This document shows positions 22,037 through 53,775 of a stretch of DNA of 64,000 bases, piece by piece. The DNA comes from Lepidodermella squamata (lineage: Eukaryota; Animalia; Gastrotricha), in NCBI GenBank assembly GCA_047495785.1, contig JBLDXI010000001.1, forward strand, positions 2,294,001 through 2,358,000, in the 5' to 3' direction. Both the position numbers and the translations under genes were made by a program. Position 1 is the stretch's first letter, and every line of letters starts with the position of its first letter. The notes below the pieces were generated by a model that saw only the letters and a program-made list of their open reading frames with translations, ran no database searches and was not told the DNA's origin.

Positions 22037-23841
22037 ATGAACGCTGATGAGTTTCGCCAGCATGGCAAGGAGATGATTGATTTCGCGGCTGATTACCTGG
22101 AAAACATCAGGGAGAGGTTGATAAATATTGAATTAAATAATTAATTATTCCAAATTTATATTTGAAGACCCGTTTTTCCCAACGACCTGAAGCCGGGATT
22201 CTTGACTCCACAGTTGCCATCAGAAGCACCACAAGAACCGGAAAGTTTCGAAGCTGTGATGGAGGATATTAATCGAGTCATATTACCCGGAGTAACTCAT
22301 TGGCATTCTCCGAAGTAAGTTCAATTTAAAATTATTTCTCAATTATACTAACCGATTAATTTTTCTAAAAGGTTTTTCGCTTATTTTCCAACTGCCAACT
22401 CATATCCGGCGATCGTTGCTGATATTCTGTCAGATGCCATTGGCTGCATAGGATTTTCATGGGCCTCCTCGCCAAGCTGCACTGAGGTTCGTATTTTAAA
22501 TTATTTCAAAACCTAATTAAAATTAAATTTTTTAAATAAAATTAGCTAGAGACAGTTATGATGGACTGGTTGGCAAAAATGCTGCAACTTCCAGAGCATT
22601 TCCTGTTCAGTTCTGGCCAAAAAGGTGGTGGCATCATTCACGGAACAGCCAGTGAAGCGACATTCACAGCTCTTTTAGCTGCCCGAAGTAGAGCTATAGC
22701 CCAACAAAAGGAACTTCATCCCAATTCAACAGCGGGCAGCGTTCTCGATAAATTGGTCGCTTTCTGCTCAGACCAGGCTCATTCCAGTGTTGAACGAGCT
22801 GGTTTGATGGGCTGTATCCAAAATTTCGTCAAAGTCCCGAGTGACGACGAAGGATCGATGCGAGGTGATGCTCTAAAACAAGCGATTGAAACTGCGAAAG
22901 CTCAAGGTCAAATTCCGTTTTACGTTGTGGCAACGCTTGGCACTACTAGTACATGTGCTTTCGATTATTTATTGGAAATCGGCAGAATTGTCGCTGAGTT
23001 CAATGAAAAGAGCGAAGCGCCGATTTGGCTGCATGTTGATGCAGCTTATGCTGGTAGTGCATTCTGTTGTCCTGAATATCGGCACTACTTGAACGGCGTG
23101 GAATTCGCCGACTCTTTCAACTTTAACCCTCACAAATGGATGTTGGTCAACTTTGACTGCTCCGCCATGTGGTTCAAAGATGCCTCACAAGTGGTTAGTT
23201 GAGAATTTTTGAGCCTCTTTTTTTGTTACTGAATCTTTTGTTTTAAGGTGGACGCGTTCAATGTCGATCCGTTGTACTTGAAACACCAATTTCAAGGGCA
23301 ACAGCAAGTTCCGGACTATCGGCATTGGCAGATCCCTCTCGGGCGTAGATTCAGAGCTTTGAAGCTTTTCTTTGTCCTTCGATTGTTCGGAGTTCGAGGA
23401 ATTCAGGTTTCTCTTCTAAGCAATTCGTTATTGTTCATTTTATTTCTGTGATTTATAGGATTATATCAGAAAGCAGATCGGACTGGCTCATTTGTTTGAA
23501 GATAGGCTGAAATCCGACAAGCGATTTGAAGTAGCAGCAAATGTCACGATGGGGCTGGTTTGTTTTCGATTGATCAAAGTTGGCGATGGTGATGACATAA
23601 ACGAGCCATCTGAAGCTCTTTACAAGGCGATTTCGAACGATGGCCGAATTCACTTGGTTCCGACAAAAGTCAAGTAGACATTTTTTCAATGAAAAATAAT
23701 GAAAAATGTTCAAAAATGCTGTTTTTCAGGAGAAAATTCATGCTTAGACTGGCGATTTGTGCGGCAAAAACCTCAGAGCAAGACATAGAATTCGCGTGGA
23801 ACGTGATCAAAGAACTGGCCACTAATGTTCTGACAGGCTGA
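22037..23841 (+). CDS. DDC: aromatic L-amino acid (DOPA) decarboxylase, PLP-dependent group II
   Basis: [16 protein letters not shown]..., [49 protein letters not shown] (PLP Lys), [15 protein letters not shown]. Residues are DDC-type (G in PLGRR, F in AYFP, H in AHSS, loop Y) rather than HDC, TDC or aldehyde synthase. Confidence 0.95.
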
Positions 23842-24540
23842 AGCGTTTCTTCCCCAAAAACATGAAATATATTTGAGGCTAATATTTCCTTGTTAATTGA
23901 TCAACTAATTTGCATTAAATTACCGTATATCATTTTAACGGTTAGAAGCTGATTAATAAAAAGTGAGAATTCCCACCTCAAATTATCGAAAAGGCTTTAG
24001 CGAGTTTTAATTATCTATTTTTTGCTGCCATATGCCGTTACAGTGGAGCAGAGGTCACAGCACCCCAAGCTAGTCATAAGGTTATTCACAGTACACGCTG
24101 GATAACTATTATTACGTTACGTGAAAAAAAACTTGCCGCCGCACAACAAGCAGCGCGCGCTCCCACTTCAATTAATTGCCTTTCGCTTTTGGAACTCCCT
24201 CTAAATGGCAACATCAAACTCATCACTAATCCTCTCACGTCATCACACACGTGCCATGTGAAGATGAATCCACCTTAAAAATCCACCTTAACAAACTTGA
24301 GGTATTTTACACTTCAATTTTCGACAATTTGAAGTATTGGCTGAACTACGTAAAATTATCTCCTTCAAATTGCTTTTTGCAGCGAAAATCATTGAGGCCG
24401 CATGGCATTGGAACAAAAGATCAACAGCGAAAAGGATAAGAATTTTTGTTTATTATTTAAACTAAAATATTGCTAAAAATATTGAAATAATACTATACTA
24501 TATCCTCTATCTCAAAGATTATTTAGTTGGGCCCCATCGA

Positions 24541-26035
24541 TTAGAAATAGAGGACCGATTCGTTGTATAGAACAGGAGAATGGATCGATAGGTTCATAGT
24601 CGTTGCCGGTTCATTCGAGCTTTCTGTTCCTCCGACTACGTCTTCCCTAGCGAAGTTTTCTCGCACGTACCGGCGGAACTTGTGCTTCATATCTTCAATT
24701 GAATCGCTGACAAAGTAGACCGACTGATAATCAGCATCTTGGTACTTTTGAACAGCAACCTTTGAAGGTTCGAATTCTCGGATTTCAGGTTTGCCGGATA
24801 GCGCATGTTTCAACTCGCCGAATGCGGACAATAAGCCGGCGCCAAAGGCCTTGACATTGCCATCGTCGGCTTCATCTCGGCATAGACCGAATTCCACCGT
24901 AAACCAGTAGAGCTAAAAGATCAAATGATTTTTCAATTTTTTTCACAATTGAGCAAAATTTACCGTTGATAATTTCTCGATTTCCTCGTCTGATGCTCCG
25001 AGTGAAGCTATTCCGATTTCTTGCGAAAAATCTGCAAAGTCAGGATCGGCCAGCATTGGAACATGACCCAAAAGCTCGTGAATGCAATCTCTGGATGAAA
25101 AAATTCTTGAAAAAATTGATAAAAGAAGGCATAAAACTCACGGTTCAGGGCTGTGATGTGGCGACGATGGATGCCGAATATATTGGGTACACATGAAAAC
25201 GCGGTAGGCCAAGCTGTAGAGAAAGTGCCTAGACGACAGCAAACCAGAGATAGGCCGTAGTTGAAACCCGGTTTGCTCCTTCAAAAAGGTCGAAACATCT
25301 TCGAGCTGCGGAATGAAATCAGGCGAGTAGATTCCTCTCTCCTCCATTAGGTTGAAAACGCGGAGAAATCCGGAGTAAGCATGCGTCTTGTGCAGCTCTT
25401 TCAGCTTTAAATACACCGTAGACCAGGTCGATATCTCACCGGGAGTGAATTCAACTCGAGGAATCGGCGATCCACTGAAAGACCAATTTTTTGAAATTTT
25501 ACCGAATTAAGGTGGATTATTTACATTTTATAATTGTAGGCGATTTGAGCGATTGCATTTCTTCGGCCACGGTAATTACTGTCGTAGAATCCCTGAAATT
25601 TCCAAAATCATCATAATTAATTTAAACTAGAGCCTAAAAACTCACTGGATGACCAGAATCTGCAGTCGGGTCGAATTTTGTTATGCAATCGATACATTTA
25701 TCCAGCTCTGAAATGTCTTTAGGGTACCAATGCTTCTTTCCAGTGGAAATGTCTCCAATCAGTTCAACATGAGAATCGGTCAGAGAGTTCCTCAAAGCTT
25801 CCAGCAATTCTTGGCCCGAATCATTTTGTCTATCGATTTGAGTTTCGACCATAAAATCGCGCTTGCTATGGTCAAATTGGTTTTTCCGAATTTCAAGCCG
25901 CTCAATTTCGGCACCTTTCAGCCTTTCGATTGTGCTGTAGATACAACTGAGAGCTATCGATGGCTGCTCAATGCCTTTGATGAGGAAAACGCATCGGTCG
26001 CTTTCCGAATCGCTAGATGAGCTTCGCGACGACAT
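24541..26035 (-). CDS. TH: biopterin-dependent aromatic amino acid hydroxylase, tyrosine hydroxylase-like (TH1), 5 exons
   Basis: ACT-like N-terminus, TKFDP...[52 protein letters not shown]. Fe ligands H, H and E are intact. HSPEP, W-F-T-V-E and YQD are TH-type signatures. Confidence 0.88.
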
Positions 26036-26497
26036 TGCGTAAGAAAAATTTCACCAAATTTCCAGGATAAAATGTGAAGACCTGAGAATAAACGCGCCCG
26101 GTTATATTTGTCCGAGAAAGGCAGGCGCACGTGGGCGAAGTTCCTCGCGCACTTAATTAGTCGCTCGGTGAGTAGTTATAGGCCGGTGTTGCGTCAATTT
26201 TTCCGGAACAGCGGTGCGCCGGTCTACGAAGCCACGTTTGAAAAGACAGTTGGCGTCAAAAACAAAATTTTCGTGTTCACGCGCATCGGATTAATCTTTT
26301 TCCTATGATTAATTATTAAGAACTCGGTAGCGGCAACGGTAGTCAGCGTGGGGAAAAATGAACTCGAGAGTTCTGGACAAATGCATCTCTTAAAATAATT
26401 GCTGATTGCGTGCCAAGTTCGCGAGTGACGCATTGACCTCTCGATCTAAAAACTCAATAGAAAAAATATTTCATCAAAATTTCTTATCGTAATCGAA
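26036..26497. promoter_or_regulatory. probable bidirectional promoter between TH1 and the pseudo-hydroxylase
   Basis: 462 bp between divergent ATGs of two paralogues. Confidence 0.5.
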
Positions 26498-27815
26498 ATG
26501 CCTCGAAGAAAACTTGGTAACAGCGAGGTTGATTATTTTGCGCGTAGCCAATGTTCGTTTTTGCTCGAAGACGTCGACCAGCCAACGGCCGCCTTGAGTT
26601 TGATTTACGAAATTGTCGAAGCTGAAAACAACGCTCAAGTTCAGCACTTGGAGATACGAAAAAAACCATTCGATGAATGCACGCGGGATATTTTGGTCGA
26701 GGTGCTGGTTGACTCGTGCGGTTCAAGCTCAGCGAATTTCATTGCTAAAAGTTTAAAAAAGCGAATCGGATTGTCCAAGGTGACTCAAATTGAGAAAATG
26801 AGTTCGGGAGATGTCGAAAAGTTATGGTACCCGAAAACATTATCGGAGCTTGACAGATATTTCGAAGCCCAGAGTAACGAAGTTGTCGCTGATTCGGTCG
26901 AGTGGTGAGAAATTATCATAATTAAAGTAATATTATTCTAGATTTTTTCTAATTTTCTTCAGGGAACTGGCATATTCTGAGTCGAAACGAGCCACTAATG
27001 AGATGGCCAGTTCCAATTATTTGCGAGCAATGAGCAAATTCGAGGCTTCACAAATTTACTCCACAAATTGCGCACCAAAAATACGAGAAATTTCAAATTT
27101 TCTTAAAGGTGCGTCGAAAATTCTCATCGCCCAGAAAAATTTCATCAATATTTGTTTTTCAAAGGAATAACGACATTTCAAATCAGAATTGTTCGAGGGA
27201 AATTTCCGAAGCGGCAGTTTTTCTATTGTTTGGCATATCGCGTTTTTGTCATCAGCCAAAATTCTCCATTCAACGTTGGCGGGAAATCGTAAGATCCCAA
27301 ATTTGAAGGTATAAATCGGTCACATTTTTTTATTTTTCGATAATTTTACAGTCATCCGAGTCGCCAATTGCTCTACCAAGTGCCAATGCTAGCTGATAGC
27401 GATTTTGCTGAATTTTTGCAAGATATTGGCATAGCTTCGCTTGGAGCGACAGACTTCCAAATCGAACAGTTGTCAATGGTAAAAATCGACCGATTTTTCG
27501 ATCATGGCCAATTTTCTAACAATTTTCCAACCTCAGATTTATCGCTCCATAGCCGAACGTGGATTGATACGAGATGCGTTTTTCGACGGAGAAGTTAGAA
27601 TGCTCGGATCTGAACTTTTATCTGAATCTAAAATCGCAAAGCCCTTGTCGGCCGAACTGGTAACAACAATTCGAGAATTCGATCCATCATCGGCAGCTTG
27701 CCCCAGCACTGATTTGTTTGTTATCGATTCGATCGAAGTGGCGCGCCTGAAATTCCGCGATTTCGTACACAAACATTTCAACAATAATAATTTACTGAAC
27801 TGCGCTATTTATTGA
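26498..27815 (+). CDS. catalytically dead aromatic amino acid hydroxylase paralogue (pseudoenzyme), 5 exons, frame intact
   Basis: ACT domain homologous to TH1, [51 protein letters not shown] is replaced by HPSRQLLYQ. All GT-AG junctions join in frame. Confidence 0.8.
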
Positions 27816-28422
27816 CTAACCGATTTCGTTTCAATTTCATTCAATTTCATTTTTATCAATAAAATGTGCTGCTACCAGATAAGTTTTTTTCAAAACTGCC
27901 GCATGAAAAAATGAATTTTGAACTTTGGTCAGCGGACTTCTGAGTTTTAAACAAAACGGCTGCATCAATTATTAAGGTGTTTTTTCCATTGTTTCCAGAA
28001 AACTCTTTTAGCGATAATTAAAAGCAACGAGCAAAATAATCAAACCGAAAGGACAAAAATTGAACTCATTTTTTTCAATCACGTGTTGCCAGCGGTAGGT
28101 CACCAAGAGGCGTAATACTTTCATCAATTTTTGCGCAATTAAAATGATAATAAGACTGACTCACCGCCGTTCTTCGTTGTCTTAAAAGCGGCGCTGACGG
28201 TTTCAGCGCCGCGTGGTCACGAAAAAATTGAGAGTTTTTAATGATAAGAAATTACAAATCAAAACACCTCATTAAAAAAACGGCTATGCCGTCCTCCTTT
28301 TAGCGCGCTCGGTGGCGTGACGCCTTTCGTACCCGTGAGCAGCTTGAAACATTGTCTACACCCGTTCTAATACGCAGTTCAATTTTTTGACATAGCTTAA
28401 TCTGACGTAGAAGCATTTCAAA

Positions 28423-29052
28423 ATGGCGGATCACCAATTTTCTGTAAAAATGCTGACCCGAGATCGCCTCGATGAGGTTGTCGATGTACTGGCGAATTCA
28501 TTCATGCAGACTCACATTCCGACGATCCACCTTAAACAATTCACACCGGAAAAGTTTCCGATCTTCGTCCGCGACTTCATCGTTGAACCTTGCATCGATC
28601 AAAACGTTAGCATTTTCGTTGAGGACTCTGCTGGTAAAATGCTTGGCGTAGTTGTTTGCGAGAAGTGGCATATCGAGGAGAATCCTACTCTGCCTGATCA
28701 GGATCAAGAGATGTTCATATTGATGGGAGAACTCGATAAAATGTTGCCGGCTGAGATGGTTGCGGAGTCGGGAAAAGGGACAATTCTGCATGTCAACATG
28801 GTCGCTACTCGAGTTGGCGAGCAAGGCCGCGGGGTTGGGACTCTGCTGATAAAATCAATGGTCGAATTTGGGCTGAATAATGGGTTCAAATACGCCTTCA
28901 ACGATTGCACATCGGCTGAAATGCAACACATATTTTTGAACAAATTGGGGTTTACTAACGTTGGAGAAATCGTGTACGATACATTCAGCGAGAAACTCAA
29001 AGGCTGCCCTGGCAAAATTGTTCTAGCTGTCAAGAAATTGCTTCAAGATTAG
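28423..29052 (+). CDS. GNAT acetyltransferase resembling insect-type arylalkylamine/dopamine N-acetyltransferase, single exon
   Basis: V..VLANSF, C..QNVS...D..GKMLGVVV, acetyl-CoA motif QGRGVG.LL and DCTS..MQHIF..KLGF match the iAANAT-like layout. Confidence 0.75.
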   Translation: MADHQFSVKMLTRDRLDEVVDVLANSFMQTHIPTIHLKQFTPEKFPIFVRDFIVEPCIDQNVSIFVEDSAGKMLGVVVCEKWHIEENPTLPDQDQEMFILMGELDKMLPAEMVAESGKGTILHVNMVATRVGEQGRGVGTLLIKSMVEFGLNNGFKYAFNDCTSAEMQHIFLNKLGFTNVGEIVYDTFSEKLKGCPGKIVLAVKKLLQD

Positions 29053-29106
29053 GCTGTCGGAATCATGAGATGAAATAATTAACCTATGACGCCCACAGCA
29101 GGCATA

Positions 29107-30215
29107 CCGTATTTCTCGAAAATATACGACACACCTGTATATATCCCCGCTCCCTAATACAACCCGACGAAAAAATCGTTTGTTCATATTTAACCCAGGC
29201 CTCGAAATTGTACCACAGCTATTTTAATTTGGGCGAAGCATGCGTTGGAACAAAAGAAAAGCCTTATTAATGACGCATTATCGTAATCAGTGATTAGCTA
29301 TCGCGTAAGCAGCTTCGCAACGTCTGATCTTGGCACCATTCATAAGCCAGCAGAAAATGCCCATTCAGCATTCACTAGCTGAGACACAGAGTTTTATTTT
29401 AAAATTTTCATATCCTTCTTAATCGTTTTAACCTTCTGGAATCGATGATGGCTGGCTCTCCTGATCGTCTTCAAGATTCCGTCCAGGTGTCCGAAGAAGA
29501 CAAGCGAAAGCGGCACCGCAAGTATTCCCTCGCATACAAAATTCGCGTGGCTGATCATGCAAAAGCAATCTCAGCAAACGATGCCTCGAGAGTCTTCAAG
29601 GTCGATCGTCGATGCGTCAAGGAATGGCTACAACATCACCAACAGCTGCTGATTCTACAGTTCGCTGGCATGGAAAAGCGTCATCGTCTCCTTGGCGCCG
29701 GTCGACCGCTGGCCTACCCTAACCTCGATCAGGTTATGGAAGAATGGATAACCGAGCAACGCCTCGCCCGCCGTCCCGTCTCAAGGCGCAGCATTTTGCT
29801 GAAAGCAAAACAGCTCGATCCATTATTCAAAGGCAGCAACGGATGGCTCGATCGTTTCCTCAAACGGTACGATTGCTGGCCGAGAGCTACTGGCTTCGAA
29901 GATGGCATCAAACGACACGTTCGATCAAGTCATCAGCCTGGATGATTTCAACGATGACGAAAGTGAACCTGACTTTTTTTTTATTGATAATTGATTTTGT
30001 TGGTTGATCAAAAAATTGTTAACTTTTTCACTTTTTCACTGAATCGACAAATAAAACAATCTAAAAACGTCGTCTTAATACGAATTGCTCGCGGCTTTTT
30101 GTGATGATTCGCAATTAAACAGCACACCCGTATATATCCCCACTCCCTAATACAACCCGAATCAAAAATCATTTGTTCATAAATATAGCCCGCGGTAAAT
30201 TTTCGAGAAATACGG
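29107..30215 (+). mobile_element. internally deleted pogo/Tigger-like (Tc1-mariner superfamily) transposon
   Basis: TA duplications, TIR ccgtatttctcgaaaat / attttcgagaaatacgg, and subterminal direct repeats at ~29131-29188 and ~30124-30181. Confidence 0.85.
29445..29945 (+). CDS. truncated pogo-like transposase (HTH + CENP-B-type HTH only, no DDD catalytic domain)
   Basis: RKYSLAYK...AAR-like HTH..V.EW, GAGRP, L..W..EQR....VSR..I..KA, FKGS.GWL.RFLKR. Confidence 0.75.
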   Translation: MMAGSPDRLQDSVQVSEEDKRKRHRKYSLAYKIRVADHAKAISANDASRVFKVDRRCVKEWLQHHQQLLILQFAGMEKRHRLLGAGRPLAYPNLDQVMEEWITEQRLARRPVSRRSILLKAKQLDPLFKGSNGWLDRFLKRYDCWPRATGFEDGIKRHVRSSHQPG

Positions 30216-31677
30216 TACCTTATCACGAGCAAATTTTCGATTTTATCATAAGTTTTATAGTAACCATTGAGGATAGAAATAAATTTTCGAATTCATCTAA
30301 TTAACGTTTTAAGTCTAAAATGTTGTAATTATGAAAATCAGCAGCAATAAAACACGGATGACAGCAATAATTCACGGCATCGCTGTTATGATTCGATTTT
30401 AGATATTCGTTTAGCTCGCGGTTGAAATCTTGAATTTCAAGCTGGTGGAGTTCTATGAATGATCTGCAATGTCTCCCTCAAATAGAGGGTCCTAGATTAT
30501 AAATGATACAGGGTGACCAATTTCAATGTGGATCACTCACAAAGGGTACCAGAATCACATGGAATATGCGATTTTTTACCGTTCTATTCTCAGAGAACTG
30601 TCGACGTTCAAGTGATCGTCTTTCTCGTCATTAATAGACCGAATTCGGGGGAATTTTGGGTAGGGTAAAGTGCTTCAAATCTGTAAAATGCTGTAGACTT
30701 TTGACATTAACTTTATCGAAGGCTGAAGCTTGCGGCGAGAGGCCATTCTTTAGCCATTAGGGCACCTTGACCCTCGAATTGCAAGGCCTGAAAAAGAAAT
30801 GTTGGGAAATTCACCATTTCCCATATAAATTCAAAATATGTTCTTTGCAAATCTGAGGCACTTTACTCTAACGGTTGTACTAACCTTGCCATTCTTGTGG
30901 AGCCTTGTGGAGTCATTAACTTGCCATTCCCAAACCAGGATGGGAGATTCCGAAACTTATGAAAAGGACCTCGAAAGTCAGGTCTGAAATCATCCAACAG
31001 GCTTCGCATCATTTTCAGTGCGATAGCGTTCATTGGCGCCACGTTGGATCCGCAAGAAAAACGACCGATTCTTTAATATTATAGCTGTGACGTCTCTGTA
31101 TATCAACGAGTCGATATAAGTATACAAAGTATGTTTCGAGTGAATCCCGTGACTCCCGTGAACCTTCAAAATTTAGACGTATGCAGTGAAAGCGAGAAAA
31201 TATCGAGTTATTTTTCTGAAAATTAGTAAATAGTGCGCATAAAGGTGTAATATTATTTGAAAAGAAAAAACAATCCTCTCCTCAAAAAAATATTGTTTTA
31301 TTTTTATGATCATTTTTTATCTGAAAATAAGTGAATATTTAAACCAGAGACCAGGAAGAAATTAGTCTCATCCGAAGCGGCGGGTCGAATTAAGATTTCC
31401 GTAATAATCGGGCATGGCTTCACGTCGTGCCCCACAGCTGAGTCAGATGAAAAGTACTCAATTGAATGCGCCTAATCTCCGAACAGGAAATTAACGGCGG
31501 TATCAATTGAAAGCTCCGAATAGGAGGTCCGGGAGTTCGCAAGACCTCCACCGCGGTTTACACCGCTATCATGAATAAAATAAACAATAGGCAGCGAAAT
31601 CACCGACATTTTGCTTAAATTTTCCGGTAAAAACCAGAAAAATCCGATCCGGAATTGTCCGGTGATTTTTGCTGATT

Positions 31678-41399: not shown

Positions 41400-42190
41400 T
41401 TTGCCTATTTCTTTAAAATGAAACCGTTAAAATTAAATAAATCGAATGACAGTGCGTAGATGCTTTGGCGAGCTTGATGCTTGTTTGAAGTGTGCTAGGT
41501 GTATTTATGGACCTTTATTGCTGAAATGGTTATTTGGAATGGTAATAATAAAATGATAAGCTCCGAGAAGGAATATGGTGCCAAACGGTAAAGTAATGTA
41601 TTCAGATTAACAATTAACAAGAACCGATAATGCGTTACTTTGGGAAAGCTTTTTGTAATAGAGAATGGGATTCGTCGCCGAAATACGCATCAGTTTTATA
41701 TGTGAAACAGCCATACCCCAGTTATAAAGGGTAAAAAGGGTATATTCAAAGCGCGCTCAATAGTTCATCATTCAATACGAAAGATTTTTTTGGGAAAAAG
41801 AACCGGTGTGCAATTCACTTTGAGATATTATTTTTGTGGTCATCTAAGATGCATGTGCCTATAGTACACGCCATGTGTGGTAGATAACGTTCTTCAGGGT
41901 TATTGTTGTGTACTTCGTATATCTAACACTGTGGCGGTGAATGAACAGTGAGCTATACCGCGGGCTGTTGGACTAACACGTGTAGGAATGCGAAGATTTA
42001 TATAGCTTTTGATCCCTTTTACCTGATTCCTCATTGCTATAAACACGCCCAGTAAGACAGCAGTATTTTATTCATCAAAGACAACCAAACATAATTATAC
42101 ATCATTAGAATTGTATAAGACATTAGGATAATCAGTCTTTAAGAGGATGAAGACGAAAAGTCAAAGAAATCAAACGGTCACAATTCTCAT

Positions 42191-43589
42191 CTACAACGCA
42201 ACGCGAGTTAAATCTGGACGATCGCGCTTGTTGAAATGTTTCCTGACGTACAGGAGAAATTGCTGCTTCATATCTTCGATTGAGTCGCTGGCAAAGTAGA
42301 GGGGCTGGTAATCGGCGTCCTGGTACTTTTGAATCGCAACAGATTCCGCGTTGAATTCCCGAATTTCAGGCTTCCCCGAAAGTGAATGTTCCAACTCGCC
42401 GTATGCGGACAACAAGCCCGCTCCAAAGGCTCTGATTTCTCCGCCATTAGCTTCATCACGGCACAAGCCGAATTCGACCGTGAACCAATAGAGCTGAGGA
42501 ACGAAATTGGAATGAGTATGTCTGTTAAAAACTGCTATTAGAAATTACCGTAGACAGCTTTTCGATGTCCTCATCTGAAGCTCCAAGCGATGCAAGACCA
42601 ATTTCCTGCGAAAAATCGGCGAAATCTGGATCGGCTAACATTGGAACGTGGCCGAGAAGCTCATGAATACAATCCCTGGAAAATCTTAAGCATTAAGGTT
42701 GCGGCTTAAGGCTGTGACAAAATTACGGCTCAGGGCTATGATGCGGCGATGATGGGTGCCGAATGTATTGCGTGCACATGAAAACGCGAAACGCGAGGCT
42801 GTAAAGGAAATGTCGCGACGAAAGCAGGCCAGATACTGGTCGTAGCTGGAACCCGGTTTTGCTCTCCAAGTAGTTCGAAGCGTCCTCCAGTTGTGGCACA
42901 AAATCCGGCGAATATATGCCCCGTTCCTCCATTTGGGTGAAAATTCGCACGAATCCTGAGTAGACATGAGTCGCATGAAGACTTTTCAGTTTCTTGTAAA
43001 CCGAAGACCAAGTCGCTACTTCATCGACTGTGAACAACACTTTTGGAATTGGATTCCCCCTAGAAGTTCAGAAATATTAATTATTCAAAATTTATTTTTA
43101 TGTAGTTATTACATTTTATAGTCGTAGGCTATCTGGGCTATGGCATTTCTCCTCGCTCGGTATTCACTGTCGTAGAATCCCTATAATTGATGTTTAGAAA
43201 AATGCAGGATAAACAATTGAGAATAATACCGGATGGCCGGAATCAGCAGTTGGGTCGAATTTTGTGATGCATTCGAGGCATTGATCAAGCTCAGATACAT
43301 TTTTGGGATACCATTGAGATTGATTCAGCAAAGTGTCTTCGATCGGATGAAAGGTTATCGCGCCAATATGTTTCTTGAAGAGTTCCGCCGATTCTTCCTT
43401 GAAATTATCGCCTATCAGCTCAACTTCGAATAGCAATTCGTGCAGGCCATTGGCTCCGAGCTGCTTTCGAATTTCGATTTTGATGATTTCAGCAAAGTTG
43501 CTCCTTTGAAATATGTCGAATAGGCGCTCGATCTCCAATATCGGCTGCCCGACATTTTTCATGGCAAAAGCGTGATAAGCAGGTGGCAT
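42191..43589 (-). CDS. TH: tyrosine hydroxylase-like TH2, 5 exons
   Basis: Same motifs and intron positions as TH1: [38 protein letters not shown] about 60 bp upstream. Confidence 0.88.
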
Positions 43590-44211
43590 TTGAAGAATTT
43601 CAAGAAATCTGATATTGCTATTTCGATGAGTTAACTCACCATGCTGCGCTTATTTATAGGCTAAAGAGCGGCGTGATACTAGATTTTATCGCAGAAAGTA
43701 ATTACCGGGTGCATCATTCTCCTGTCTTTAACTACGCACGAAAGTCTGGCCGAAGGCGTCGCCGCGATGGGGTTGATGCCAGGATAGGATAAAAAACCCA
43801 GAAGACAAACACGTTGCGCGTCGTCATCAACGCAATTAATTAACGCTGCGATAATTCAGACGACAGAAAAAACATCAGGCGCTCACCTTAATAATATGAC
43901 ATTTTAAATACAATGAATGAATTGTTTGAATTTGACGACTCGAGGGGGAAGTAAAGGAAAATATTAAAATTTAGGAATACAAGCACATTTATTCCGCTGA
44001 CTATTGCAACGCTCAAAAATTCGAATCGCTGATTTCAGTGAAATCGCATAATTCTGTAACATGATGTAGGATTATTTGGTTTGTTCCAACACAACAGCAC
44101 TGCTTTTTCATCCGGTCGGTTTTAAACCTTCTGCTCAAAAATGAGACCTGCAATATTATTTATTTTTAATGAATATCGCAAGGATGCGTTACTTATATAT
44201 GCCATGGAATG

Positions 44212-45840
44212 TTAAACGAAGGCTAAGTTTTGGGAGGCTGTACTGGGATATTCTCCCTCCGGCAGTTTATCAACTGGAAGTTTCTTGCCAGCCATTTTCA
44301 GTTGAACGATTGGCTGACCGGGTGCATAACGTTCGGCTGGCGCTTTCAAACCGTCGAAGCCATCCTCAGTCTCCGGCATGAAGAAAATACAAAAGGTCAA
44401 CTCCAAAGCAGCAACAGCGGCGAAAGGAAGATAGGAATACTGGCTCATATTGGCTTGCATAACAGGGAAAATGAAACTGCTGATTAGGTTGCATGTCCAG
44501 TTAGTGAACATGGCAACACTCATGCCCATCAGCCTTGCGTCTTGCCCAAAAAGCTCAGCAGCGGCAAAGCATGAAATCGGTCCTGGTCCAGACGCCAGAG
44601 ATATGTGAAATATTGCGAATCCCAAAATACTGGCTTGGAAAATCTGGAAAGTATGAAAATGTTAGCAAAAATGTGTACAATTTTTTCACGGGCTAACGTT
44701 GAACGTTAAAAACATAACAAGTAGAACTTGAGCCAATGTTATTCCGATCAAGCTGGTGATCTTCCGCGGCCTTCTACCGACACGGGCGATAATTATTGCG
44801 TTTATAATATTCCCCATAAGATTTGCACACATAGTCAGGTTGACAGTGATGACCAGAGGCCACCATAGTGAACGACTCTTGAAAACATTCCTCACAGAGA
44901 CAGGTTCAATTTTCGCCTCGGCTAAGGATTCGTCCTTCAGTTCAGCCATTTCTGCTAGTATTTCTTTATCAGAAGTGCCTCGCAGTTTTCTCAGAGCTTC
45001 CATTGCTAGGTCTTCTTTTAAAAGATCGATAAGAGCTCGAGGACTTCGACGACAAACAGCAAGGCGATGAAGTCCAAGAAATAGACAACCCCCTCGAAAA
45101 CTTGAAATTATAATGAATAACTACTGGAAAAATCTTTAATCGCGTTCTTTGACTTACGGACTATGGAACAAATGTTGCCTCCTTTCCCTGGACGAAACTG
45201 AGGCCGAGTATATTTGAGACAAGTATACCGAAGCTGACGCCGATGTCGATGAGACTTCCGAGTAGCCCCCTCAATTTATTAGGCGCGTGTTCAATGACAA
45301 GAGACAATGCAATAAAGAGTGCGAAACCGGCTAGAATCCTACGGCCAATGTATAGCGGAACACGGCTTCCAGTCCAGAGTGTCACATGTCACAAACATGA
45401 TCAATGAGCCGATAAAACCAACAGCAGCTGCCGCAACCAAGGATTTATTCCTGTAGATATTATAACTCAATTTGGTAACGAAAAAGCTCTCAGGTAGCTT
45501 ACTTTCCAATTAATACTGAAATATTGACAGGAAACCACGTGGAAGCGCTGCCCAGTTGTCATTCAATTCCGTTGGTGAAAGTAATTGACCCTTACGAACA
45601 ATTGACTGGTTGACGTAGTTATTCGATACTTCCTAAGGAGCGTTAATTACTCATTACCCCACATGGAAAAAAGATAAAAATTGTAAATGCTTCATCAATT
45701 TAAAAATAGAGTTTACCTAAATTGTAGTCAAACAGAAAAGAGGATCCTAGGACCACCGTCACGTTGCAAAACACCAGGTAGAAGGTCCAGGATTTCCGAT
45801 CTTCGATAACTGAATCACTCATAATCTCAGCAGATTTCAT
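44212..45840 (-). pseudogene. SLC2/GLUT-like copy 3, pseudogene
   Basis: Paralogue of copy 4 with a premature TAG at 45633-45635 (TAT in copy 4), a deletion of the ELTG...GVSV segment, a deletion in exon 2 and frameshifts. Confidence 0.85.
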
Positions 45841-49600: not shown

Positions 49601-49972
49601 GGTGATTGAGACGGCATCCAGCGAACGCCAACAATCTTTCACCGTATCTTTTCCATTTAAAAATTATTCGCATCGGCTATTAAATTCCTAATCTGAATTT
49701 TTTAATTATGATTGTTTTTCAGATGGTGAGGTCGCCCTCTATGTTACAGCAGCATATTATGAAAGCTGTAAAAAAACCGACAGTACGGTACATGTATATT
49801 TTAGGGATCCCTTATAAGATTCCTGATTGTTAAAAACACACCCAATAAGAAGCATGTGTATTTGATTTAGCAAAGACAAACAATAACTATATGAAAGAAA
49901 TTGCGATAATAATCTTTCACGGGTATGTATGGATAAGTTATAAGAAACCAATAAAGCTGTCATAATTCTCCT

Positions 49973-51371
49973 CTACAAAGCAACGCGAGTTAAATCTGGA
50001 CGATCGCGCTTGTTGAAATGTTTCCTGACGTACAGGAGAAATTGCTGCTTCATATCTTCGATTGAGTCGCTGGCAAAGTAGAGGGGCTGGTAATCGGCGT
50101 CCTGGTACTTTTGAATCGCAACAGATTCCGCGTTGAATTCCCGAATTTCAGGCTTCCCCGAAAGTGAATGTTCCAACTCGCCGTATGCGGACAACAAGCC
50201 CGCTCCAAAGGCTCTGATTTCTCCGCCATTAGCTTCATCACGGCACAAGCCGAATTCGACCGTGAACCAATAGAGCTGAGGAACGAAATTGGAATGAGTA
50301 TGTCTGTTAAAAACTGCTATTAGAAATTACCGTAGACAGCTTTTCGATGTCCTCATCTGAAGCTCCAAGCGATGCAAGACCAATTTCCTGCGAAAAATCG
50401 GCGAAATCTGGATCGGCTAACATTGGAACGTGGCCGAGAAGCTCATGAATACAATCCCTGGAAAATCTTAAGCATTAATGTTGCGGCTTAAGGCTGTGAC
50501 AAAATTACGGCTCAGGGCTATGATGCGGCGATGATGGGTGCCGAATGTATTGCGTGCACATGAAAACGCGAAACGCGAGGCTGTAAAGGAAATGTCGCGA
50601 CGAAAGCAGGCCAGATACTGGTCGTAGCTGGAACCCGGTTTTGCTCTCCAAGTAGTTCGAAGCGTCCTCCAGTTGTGGCACAAAATCCGGCGAATATATG
50701 CCCCGTTCCTCCATTTGGGTGAAAATTCGCACGAATCCTGAGTAGACATGAGTCGCATGAAGACTTTTCAGTTTCTTGTAAACCGAAGACCAAGTCGCTA
50801 CTTCATCGACTGTGAACAACACTTTTGGAATTGGATTCCCCCTAGAAGTTCAGAAATATTAATTATTCAAAATTTATTTTTATGTAGTTATTACATTTTA
50901 TAGTCGTAGGCTATCTGGGCTATGGCATTTCTCCTCGCTCGGTATTCACTGTCGTAGAATCCCTATAATTGATGTTTAGAAAAATGCAGGATAAACAATT
51001 GAGAATAATACCGGATGGCCGGAATCAGCAGTTGGGTCGAATTTTGTGATGCATTCGAGGCATTGATCAAGCTCAGATACATTTTTGGGATACCATTGAG
51101 ATTGATTCAGCAAAGTGTCTTCGATCGGATGAAAGGTTATCGCGCCAATATGTTTCTTGAAGAGTTCCGCCGATTCTTCCTTGAAATTATCGCCTATCAG
51201 CTCAACTTCGAATAGCAATTCGTGCAGGCCATTGGCTCCGAGCTGCTTTCGAATTTCGATTTTGATGATTTCAGCAAAGTTGCTCCTTTGAAATATGTCG
51301 AATAGGCGCTCGATCTCCAATATTGGTTGCCCAACATTTTTCATGGCAAAAGCGTGATAAGCAGGTGGCAT
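49973..51371 (-). CDS. TH: tyrosine hydroxylase-like TH3 (protein apparently identical to TH2)
   Basis: Near-identical to 42191-43589 at an offset of 7782 bp. Confidence 0.88.
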
Positions 51372-52052
51372 TTGAAGAATTTCAAGAAATCTGATATTGC
51401 TATTTCGATGAGTTAACTCACCATGCTGCGCTTATTTATAGGCTAAAGAGCGGCGTGATACTAGATTTTATCGCAGAAAGTAATTACCGGGTGCATCATT
51501 CTCCTGTCTTTAACTACGCACGAAAGTCTGGCCGAAGGCGTCGCCGCGACGGGGTCGATGCCATGATAGACGCATGAAAAACCAAAAATATTGGAAGGTA
51601 GCGCGACAAGCACGTCGCGCGCTGACATCAATGCAATTATATCACGCCGCGATTATTCAGGCGACAGAAAAAATGAGGCGCTCACCTTATAATTATGACA
51701 TTTTAATTATCATAGATGATTGAAAAACTCCATTTAATCCTTGTTTGAAGACTCGAGGGGAAAGCATATGAAATAAATGAACGTTCAGGAATGCAAGCAC
51801 AATTATTCCGCTGACTATTGCAATGAAAGTTCGAATCACTGATTTCTGTGGAAATTGCATAATCCTGTAAAATGATTAGGGATTATTTGGTTTGTTACAA
51901 CACAGCAGCACTGCTTTTTCATTCGGGTGGCTTTCAACCTTCTACTTGACAAATGAGACCTGAATTATCTTTTATTTTCCATGTAAATATCGTAATGTAT
52001 GCGTAATATTTGCAATGGAAAGTCATTTGAATGCAGAATATTAGAAGATATT

Positions 52053-53775
52053 TCAAGGATATTCTTCCTCCGGTAATTTATCAGTAACTCGAGATTTCTT
52101 GCAAGCCATTTTCAGCTGCACGATTGGCTGACCGGGTGCATACCGTTCGGCTGGCGTTTTCGAACCACTTAAGCCATCCCCCGTCTCCGGCATGAAGAAG
52201 AGGCAAAAGCACAGCTCGAAGGCAGCAACAGCGGCGAAAGGAAGAAATGAATACTGGCTCATACTGGCTTGCATAACAGGGAAAATGAAACTGCTGATTA
52301 TGTTGCAGGTCCAGCTCGTGAACATTGCAACACTCATGCCCATCAGCCTTGCGTCTTGCCCAAAAAGCTCAGCAGCGGCAAAGCATGAAATCGGACCGGG
52401 TCCAGACGCCAGGGATATGTGAAATATAGCGAATCCCAAAATACTGGCTTGGAAGATCTGGAAAGTATGAAAATGTTAGCAAAAATGTGTACAATTTTTT
52501 CACGGGCTAACGTTGAACGTTAAAAAGATAACTAGCAGAACTTGGGCCAATGTTATTCCGATCAAACCAGTGATCACTAGCGGCCTTCTACCGACTCGGT
52601 CGATAATTATAGCGTTTATAATATTTCCCAAAAGATTTGCGACCGAAACGCCCAGATTTGCCAAACCAGCCATCTCTGAGCTCAAACCAGCCGAGCTGAT
52701 AACATTAGCTGCGTAGAAGAAAACAGGAGCCATTCCGGTAAGTTCTGCACACATAGTCAGGTTGACGGTGATGATAAGAGGCCACCATAATGAACGACTT
52801 TTGAAAACGTTCCTCACAGAGACAGGTTCGATTTTCGCCTCGGCTGTTGATTCGTCCTTCAATTCAGCTATTTCTGCTAGTATTTCTTTTTCAGAAGCGC
52901 CTCGCAGTTTTTTCAGAGCTTCGATTGCAAGATCTTCTTTTCCAAGATCGACAAGAGCTCGAGGGCTTTCGACAACAAAGAGCAAGGCGGTGAAGTCCAA
53001 GAAATAGATAACCACCTCGAAAACTTGAAATATTTACAGATACATTTTGCACAAATAAAAATCGCTGACTTACGAAACAAATATTGCCACGTAGTCTCTT
53101 TTCCAAGGACGAAGCTGAGGCCGAGTATGTTGGAAACAAGTAGACCCAGACTGGCACCGATGCCGATAAGACTTCCAAGAAGTCCCCTCAACTTATCCGG
53201 CGCGTGTTCGATGACAAGAGACGGGCCAATAACGAGCGCAAAACCGGCTTGAACTCCCAATATCGTACGACCAATGTAAAGCGGAACATGGCTGCCAGTC
53301 CAAGGTGTCACAAACATGATCGAAGCGCCAATAGAGCCGACAGCAGCTGCTGCAGCCAAAGATTTCTTCCTGGAGATGTAACGTAAGTCAATTTGGTAAC
53401 GATAAAAATGTTTTAACGTAGCTTACTTCCCAATCAAAGCTGAAATTTTGACGGGAAACCACGTGGAAGCGATAATTCCACCGATTAAATAGAGCGAGAC
53501 GATCGCGGACCAGTTAGCGTTAAGTTCTTCCGGTGTTGTTAATTGACCGTTACGAACAAAAGACTGGTTGACGTAGTCGTTCAATACTTCATAAGGAGCG
53601 TTAATTACCCCTGATGGGAAAAAATTACATTTTTCATACAAAAAAAGAAAGAAAAAAGCAGTTCACCTAAATTGTAGCCGAACAGAAAAGAGGATCCAAG
53701 CACCACTGTCACGTTGCAAAAGACCAGGTAGAAGGTCCAGGATTTCCGTTCTTCGATAACAGAATGCTTCATCAT
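52053..53775 (-). CDS. SLC2/GLUT-family transporter copy 4 (intact)
   Basis: FLFGYNLG, VINAP, VESPR, AELTG, DRVGRRPL, GPGP and MPET motifs in frame. Confidence 0.88.

Follow-up and report, generated by a model that had tools for sequence, protein, structure and literature searches.

A spliced tyrosine hydroxylase paralogue without its histidine iron ligands in a catecholamine-pathway gene group of the gastrotrich Lepidodermella squamata

We analysed a 64,000-nucleotide stretch of the genome of the gastrotrich Lepidodermella squamata (GenBank assembly GCA_047495785.1, contig JBLDXI010000001.1, positions 2,294,001 to 2,358,000 of the forward strand), referred to here as the window, in which a divergent tyrosine hydroxylase (TH) paralogue, the candidate, lies head-to-head with an intact TH gene, TH1. 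The candidate is intact, transcribed, spliced and constrained, and the data support a non-catalytic, or at least non-hydroxylase, role as its best reading. Overall, we favour with some confidence the interpretation that it is a real, expressed and selectively maintained TH paralogue that is no longer a hydroxylase (a pseudoenzyme) and that probably acts through its N-terminal ACT domain; that it is not a pseudogene and has some non-catalytic role appears quite likely. The initial annotation of this DNA, made from the letters and their reading frames, had proposed selection for a non-catalytic role, a proposal now backed by a spliced transcript, an open frame, an excess of synonymous over non-synonymous divergence and the loss of iron ligands.

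Gene structure and spliced transcripts

The gene model was rebuilt from the sequence, and all work on homology, family membership and structure was performed exon by exon, using the following features.

26498-27815, + strand: candidate, a TH-like paralogue with 5 exons and 1083 nt (360 codons plus TGA)
26498-26904, + strand: exon 1 (E1), N-terminus, ACT-type regulatory domain, WYPK..SELD and diverged start of the catalytic domain
26905-26962, + strand: intron 1, 58 nt, GT..AG
26963-27108, + strand: exon 2 (E2), catalytic-domain remnant, homologous to the middle of TH1 exon 3
27109-27164, + strand: intron 2, 56 nt, phase 1, GT..AG
27165-27288, + strand: exon 3 (E3), remnant of the pterin/substrate-binding region
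27289-27351, + strand: intron 3, 63 nt, phase 2, GTAAGA..ACAG
27352-27478, + strand: exon 4 (E4), one-time iron-ligand motif, then the best-conserved block
27479-27536, + strand: intron 4, 58 nt, phase 0, GT..AG
27537-27815, + strand: exon 5 (E5), diverged C-terminal half of the catalytic domain, with the stop codon TGA at 27813-27815
27858-27863, + strand: AATAAA polyadenylation-type hexamer, 43 nt past the candidate stop

The uninterrupted five-exon open reading frame (ORF) described in the initial annotation was reproduced, with four GT..AG introns and no internal stop, whereas the same exons read in the other two frames contain 15 and 25 stops. The genome is compact at this window, with introns of 50-63 nt. 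The start codons of the candidate (26498) and TH1 (26035) face each other across 462 bp, in agreement with the divergent pairing originally claimed, and this arrangement suggests that the two genes may share a bidirectional promoter.

Transcript evidence came from contigs of two public runs, X1 (2015, covering parts of the stretch) and X2 (2024, covering most of it), placed on positions 24400-29100. The RNA status of X1 was a guess of the search tool, and the splicing pattern supports that guess: X1 behaves as RNA, because all four TH1 introns are removed in its contigs (CT..AC ends on the + strand) and because the spacer at 27854-28324 is uncovered, with depth dropping to 0 at the bin that begins at 27854. 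In X1, three of the four predicted candidate introns are spliced exactly as modelled. Intron 1 is skipped at a joint from 26903/4 to 26962/3, which removes exactly 58 nt with GT..AG ends, and a loose end, GGTCGAGT, lies before 26962. At intron 2, contigs pass from the end of E2 (loose end behind 27109) into AATAACGGC, the start of E3, which carries the haplotype variant 27173 A>G, and a fold-back contig holding the reverse complement of the E2/E3 junction provides a second sighting. At intron 4, two contigs go on from 27478 into ATTTATCGC, the start of E5. Intron 3 has good consensus sites and interrupts the same codon in the same phase as the RNA-confirmed TH1 intron at 25091-25141. A mature, spliced mRNA of the candidate, for which the initial annotation had named RNA junctions as a check, is thus present in X1, with a contig depth of the same order as that of TH1, although contig depths cannot rank expression. 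Many joints between opposite strands were also seen in X1 contigs over the region (e.g. 24536/24633, 26604/26708 and 27028/27194); these resemble fold-back assembly or library chimeras rather than biology, and one of them preserves the E2/E3 junction.

The same data bear on the proposal that the transcript is non-coding and regulatory, with divergent transcription from the TH1 promoter as the relevant process and the ORF irrelevant. The head-to-head arrangement, with 462 bp between start codons, and the low X1 depth across this intergenic region (about 1.1-2.4) would agree with it, but it offers no reason for 360 open codons, for in-frame indels or for non-synonymous differences (pN) well below saturated synonymous ones (pS), and we regard it as very improbable.

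Catalytic losses and the regulatory domain

The candidate is homologous to TH in every exon (human TH, 2xsn/6zvp; TH1; Biopterin_H, PF00351), with 41% amino-acid identity to TH1 over 343 aligned codons, and TH1 is the best-scoring paralogue for each exon. E1 and E5 align to TH1 exons 1 and 5 with 39% (E 3e-23) and 36% (E 8e-12) identity, respectively. E2 matches Biopterin_H profile positions 73-117 (E 0.0021; tblastn to TH1, E 1.5e-4), E3 matches positions 120-149 (E 0.0039) and E4 scores 38.9 bits (E 7e-10), exceeding the gathering score of 22.7, which places the candidate in the Biopterin_H family by homology. Tyrosine hydroxylase is the best PDB match for both E3 and E4. Pfam scans of E1 and E5 returned no relevant family, E5 alone had no Pfam match and no match to an aromatic amino acid hydroxylase (AAAH) in the PDB, and PDB sequence searches with E5 and E2 gave chance matches only. 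As in TH, an ACT domain is followed by a catalytic-type domain, and intron positions are shared with TH1 and human phenylalanine hydroxylase (PAH).

Alignment of E4 to human TH (2xsn, residues 169-206) showed that the HELLGH motif reads RQLLYQ in the candidate, with Arg and Gln in place of the two His ligands, as had been noted from the sequence. The earlier description of the protein as iron-ligand-less holds for both histidines and fails for the third iron ligand: of the 2-His-1-carboxylate triad (H-x4-H plus Glu), the Glu alone is kept (TVEFG in TH1, IAERG in the candidate), and the Trp and Phe flanking it have both become Arg in E5. In E3, the Arg that binds the substrate carboxylate is kept, as in TH, whereas the GLLS pterin loop reads GKFP, and the CTQYIRH..SPEP stretch, correctly described as scrambled, has been replaced and is 5 residues shorter. 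The initial annotation had further proposed that a TKFDP..HPGF..PIP segment was deleted. TKFDP has in fact diverged in place at the end of E1, where ADS is kept, and the loss concerns the approximately 40 residues that follow: TH1 exon 2 is absent, as are the opening ~16-18 codons of TH1 exon 3 (together spanning GF..YR..RR to ..PIP..TW), and the RNA joins E1 directly to E2. E5 carries an additional 7-residue deletion relative to TH1, and the protein ends ~10 residues past the last stretch that aligns to the TH1 catalytic domain, leaving it, unlike TH, without a C-terminal dimerisation arm and without a tetramerisation helix.

The candidate is thus a clear enzyme homologue that has lost residues essential for catalysis, and it falls short of a complete catalytic domain of about 330 profile positions. 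On this alignment, a hydroxylase with a canonical iron site is excluded, because, among other changes, both His ligands have been replaced, the pterin loop is altered and the ~40-residue stretch is missing.

The N-terminal ACT domain, by comparison, is retained, as originally claimed. In addition to the identity between E1 and TH1 exon 1, an AlphaFold2 model of E1 presents ACT topology (core pLDDT 73-82, mean 64.6), and Foldseek searches with this model matched the TPH2 regulatory domain (E about 4e-4) and, at E about 1e-4 to 1e-3, the ACT domains of TPH2, aspartokinase, phosphoglycerate dehydrogenase and Dictyostelium PAH. The Pfam ACT models gave no match to the candidate. The LEIRK strand motif and WYPK..SELD, reported in the candidate by the initial annotation and located here in E1, are invariant in the three paralogues. 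ACT domains of PAH, TH and TPH2 are described as dimerisation modules (PMC4822156; PMC8748767; PMC5055035), and the candidate keeps the LE(I/T/S)R(K/P) strand motif of these dimers (PMC4822156; 7qri). In the PAH ACT dimer, the residues described as binding phenylalanine include a YxF motif (PMC4822156). Unlike in PAH, this motif is not conserved in the candidate, which makes amino-acid sensing of the PAH type less likely.

Selection, age and the second haplotype

Across the 343 codons aligned with TH1, synonymous differences are saturated (pS 0.78) and non-synonymous differences amount to half that level (pN 0.40). None of 20000 composition-matched shuffles of the coding sequence was free of stops (mean 21.7 stops), and in simulations, which ignore indels, the share of copies still open fell to 31%, 6.5% and 0.5% at 0.02, 0.05 and 0.1 neutral substitutions per site. 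The candidate differs from TH1 by ~9 indels, every one of them a multiple of three, and all its splice sites are intact. The open frame, the saturated pS and the in-frame indels together indicate that the protein divergence (dN about 0.5 on the candidate branch) built up under selection on the frame. In E4, amino-acid identity to TH1 reaches 69% (pN 0.19, pS 0.76), whereas third codon positions are 41% identical; the conserved block is therefore attributable to selection rather than to recent gene conversion from TH1, which we considered as its source and ruled out on those diverged third positions.

Treating TH1, TH2 (a further TH copy in the window) and the candidate as a three-taxon star, we obtained the following non-synonymous (dN) branch lengths.

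ACT exon: candidate 0.40; TH1 0.26; TH2 0.35
Catalytic exons: candidate 0.50; TH1 0.06; TH2 0.08

The catalytic remnant has evolved ~7 times faster in the candidate than in TH1 or TH2, whereas the ACT exon has evolved at about the rate of its paralogues. With pN 0.39 against pS 0.79, the remnant has lost most, not all, of its constraint. Retention in the candidate of sites identical between TH1 and TH2 did not discriminate from retention of variable sites (Fisher p 0.82), and this comparison was not used.

Two other explanations were considered. If the candidate were a transcribed, duplicated pseudogene in decay, its transcript would be incidental to the activity of the TH1 promoter region, and its open frame would be a relic. 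The accelerated catalytic exons, the large catalytic-domain deletions and the lost catalytic residues all favour such an account, and, as a tandem inverted duplicate, the candidate resembles an unprocessed pseudogene. It departs from one in having no stop, no frameshift and no broken splice site in either the window copy or the variant haplotype, in its spliced transcript and in a pN far below saturated pS. Loss of catalysis took a long divergence during which the frame stayed open throughout, whereas the simulations leave room for no more than a few per cent neutral divergence; a 360-codon frame with four canonical introns and translatable indels is unexpected at synonymous saturation, as is an ACT exon that shows no acceleration over active paralogues. 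Pseudogene decay appears unlikely to us.

The residual constraint on the catalytic remnant could alternatively reflect a neofunctionalised ligand-binding or catalytic protein that is independent of TH1, such as a carrier or sensor of tyrosine, L-DOPA, a pterin or an anionic metabolite in an Arg-rich pocket, or an enzyme with another metal site or none. The retained Glu ligand and substrate-carboxylate Arg, the three new Arg residues that would line the former active site and the location of the gene within a catecholamine-pathway gene group are all compatible with this possibility. The rewritten pterin loop and CTQYIRH/SPEP stretch and the loss of ~40 residues, however, suggest that the AAAH pocket is probably gone, the highest relative constraint falls on the ACT exon rather than on the pocket, and no precedent was found in the literature searched; we consider neofunctionalisation of this kind improbable.

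A second haplotype was available from X2 contigs, in an animal whose published assembly reports 2.99% heterozygosity and a single adult transcriptome (PMC11660948). Over the 262 candidate codons covered, 16 exonic positions distinguish the X2 contigs from the window; synonymous and non-synonymous changes number 8 each (6 and 8, respectively, on a per-codon count), giving a pN/pS of 0.28-0.37 (binomial p 0.012-0.065). Most replacements are conservative (S/N, N/K, F/L, M/I, T/A, I/L), and the sole indel in the gene lies in intron 1, so the second haplotype is open as well. Frameshifts in orthologues had been put forward as a mark of decay; within the gene of this animal, the second haplotype has none. 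Purifying selection, in sum, is indicated by the comparison with paralogues and suggested by the haplotypes, and the dN/dS check proposed in the initial annotation gave, by proxy, values below 1 in both the TH1 comparison and the haplotype pair.

The intron structure indicates that the candidate is not a recent copy of its neighbour. Intron 2 splits FLK|G..ITTFQ in phase 1 at a place where TH1, TH2 and the third copy, TH3, read straight through. By a count anchored on the TH1 intron at the human PAH exon 7/8 boundary (Pro281, phase 2), with a PAH residue numbering that we take to be that of phenylketonuria alleles, this codon corresponds to PAH codon 236 and the intron to human PAH intron 6 in both position and phase. 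In human PAH, the last base of exon 6 is c.706, which opens codon 236, as the standard naming EX6-96A>G = c.611A>G implies. TH1 shares the human PAH exon boundaries 4/5, 5/6 and 7/8 in both position and phase and has an intron close to 9/10; the 6/7 boundary, which TH1-3 lack, is preserved by the candidate alone. That intron 2 might be an artefact mending a frameshift was ruled out, since X1 splices it and it matches PAH intron 6. On this count, intron positions are conserved between gastrotrich TH and vertebrate PAH, and there are two alternatives: the candidate diverged ahead of the split between TH1 and TH2, or the intron disappeared on more than one occasion. As judged from its introns, the candidate lineage is old despite adjoining TH1, because an ancestral intron gone from TH1, TH2 and TH3 is still present in it.

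Searches for relatives returned little. A word-index protein search with E1 gave 7 candidates, none of them scoring, a metagenome scan with E1 found nothing, and HMMER with E1 against 1.84 billion representatives produced a single match, to a 1482-residue bacterial tandem-repeat protein hit in 14 stretches, which we judged spurious. TH1 was not recovered from the HMMER library either, although ~75 bits would be expected, which indicates that the library probably lacks the proteins of this animal and that the blank carries no information on orthologues. A metagenome scan with TH1 exon 3 identified a soil contig (Ga0066671_10051376, 2085 nt) at 44% identity, which is no close relative. By tblastn-type exon comparison, the window contains no second candidate-like copy beside TH2 or TH3. 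That no relatives were found anywhere is a point that pseudogene decay can claim.

Several observations weigh against a selectively maintained pseudoenzyme. No orthologue was found in another species, in databases that probably lack this animal, and constraint is deduced from paralogues and a single haplotype pair. Eight of the 16 exonic haplotype differences crowd into 47 nt (26727-26773) within predicted helix 2 of the ACT exon; instead of independent substitutions, this cluster may represent a complex mutation or a short tract of gene conversion. The candidate introns show 1 substitution in 172 nt, a rate no higher than that of non-synonymous sites, and the acetyltransferase gene downstream (GNAT) is far more constrained, with 22 synonymous changes and 1 non-synonymous change against the other haplotype. 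Given this clustering, the low intron rate and the contrast with GNAT, the haplotype test on 16 substitutions is weak and at most suggestive; its wide confidence range, with p 0.065 by codon, leaves room for a pseudogene, and constraint on the candidate is at best weak beside that on GNAT. At the transcript level, the intron 3 junction is absent among the X1 joints listed, and the case for a translated protein draws on the open frame and the spliced RNA. The ~40-residue core deletion may also stop the catalytic domain from folding, and interaction with TH1 and co-expression in the same cells are predictions of the partner model.

Gene neighbourhood and possible roles

The gene order around the candidate is DDC-like gene, TH1, candidate, GNAT and a small transposon, and the following neighbouring features were annotated.

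about 22037-23841, + strand: DOPA-decarboxylase-like gene (DDC)
24541-26035, - strand: TH1, an intact 5-exon tyrosine hydroxylase gene with its ATG at 26035
26036-26497, no strand: divergent intergenic region between TH1 and the candidate, 462 bp, presumed to hold shared 5' regulatory sequence and 5' untranslated regions
28423-29052, + strand: GNAT acetyltransferase, single exon, just downstream of the candidate
about 42.2-43.6 kb and 50.0-51.4 kb, - strand: TH2 and TH3, 5-exon TH copies beside transporter genes

TH1 matches Pfam Biopterin_H (4.5e-39 and 2.9e-27), has intact HELLGH and TVEFG motifs, and finds tyrosine hydroxylases as its best PDB matches (5.7e-28). Its last 40 residues do not align to the human TH C-terminus, which fits the earlier suggestion that TH1 lacks a tetramerisation helix. 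TH2 and TH3 end earlier still, about 17 residues past the catalytic domain, and likewise lack the helix. These two copies (41900-43600 and 49700-51380, minus strand) are near-identical, with every translated exon piece the same, and belong to a segmental duplication together with exons of an MFS-type transporter (44212-44625 and 52053-53359). GNAT is the most deeply covered gene in X1 (word depth about 148), its haplotype pattern indicates very strong purifying selection, and its Pfam matches are only borderline (Acetyltransf_1, E 8e-4). Downstream lies a DNA-transposon-like element of ~1.1 kb (29105-30217) with 23-nt terminal inverted repeats (29105-29127 and 30195-30217), a 73-nt subterminal direct repeat and a sole ORF encoding a Tc5/pogo-type helix-turn-helix (29445-29945). 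Contigs of both X1 and X2 leave the window sequence immediately past the stop codon of GNAT (loose ends at 29053 and 29063), which suggests that the other haplotype may lack the transposon or differ there.

In a maintained pseudoenzyme, the candidate protein would act by binding through its ACT domain, with the catalytic remnant serving as a scaffold, and the three new Arg residues (at the first His ligand and in place of the Trp and Phe beside the Glu) may fill the empty metal site. Its most likely partner would be the ACT domain of the divergently transcribed TH1, itself without a tetramerisation helix, in a heteromer that might stabilise or regulate TH1. A heteromer with TH1 is the most economical model given ACT dimerisation, the lack of a TH tetramerisation helix and divergent transcription 462 bp away; this specific mechanism is a reasonable proposal, yet one that we consider rather unlikely. 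The group formed by DDC, TH1, the candidate and GNAT probably makes N-acylated dopamine.

The trypanosomatid prozymes are dead paralogues of AdoMetDC or deoxyhypusine synthase that heterodimerise with the live enzyme and activate it. The proposed working model resembles them in involving a dead, duplicated paralogue kept under selection with a putative live partner in the same genome, and differs in enzyme family and organism group; for the candidate, heterodimerisation and an effect on activity would be predictions. Few metabolic enzymes have been studied as thoroughly as the aromatic amino acid hydroxylases, which are known to be regulated by phosphorylation, catecholamine feedback, 14-3-3 and DNAJC12. 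In the literature searched, no dead member of the family with a role was found, and TH in gastrotrichs received a passing mention only. The strongest version of the model, in which the candidate would be a dedicated non-catalytic TH subunit, that is, an ancient iron-free paralogue paired through ACT domains with a helix-less TH, controlling its stability or activity and representing the first prozyme-like AAAH pseudo-subunit, is in our judgement unlikely; its setting would be a gene cluster, rare among animals, that yields a dopamine-derived product.

Were the candidate merely a slowly dying gene, it would be ordinary. If it does partner with TH1, it would represent a new mode of TH regulation or assembly, would extend to catecholamine synthesis the principle that a dead paralogue controls a live one, and would provide a natural experiment on how far the AAAH fold tolerates the absence of its metal. 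The candidate is also relevant to the groups of TH, DDC, acetyltransferase and transporter genes in this animal, which are unusual and have been duplicated repeatedly.

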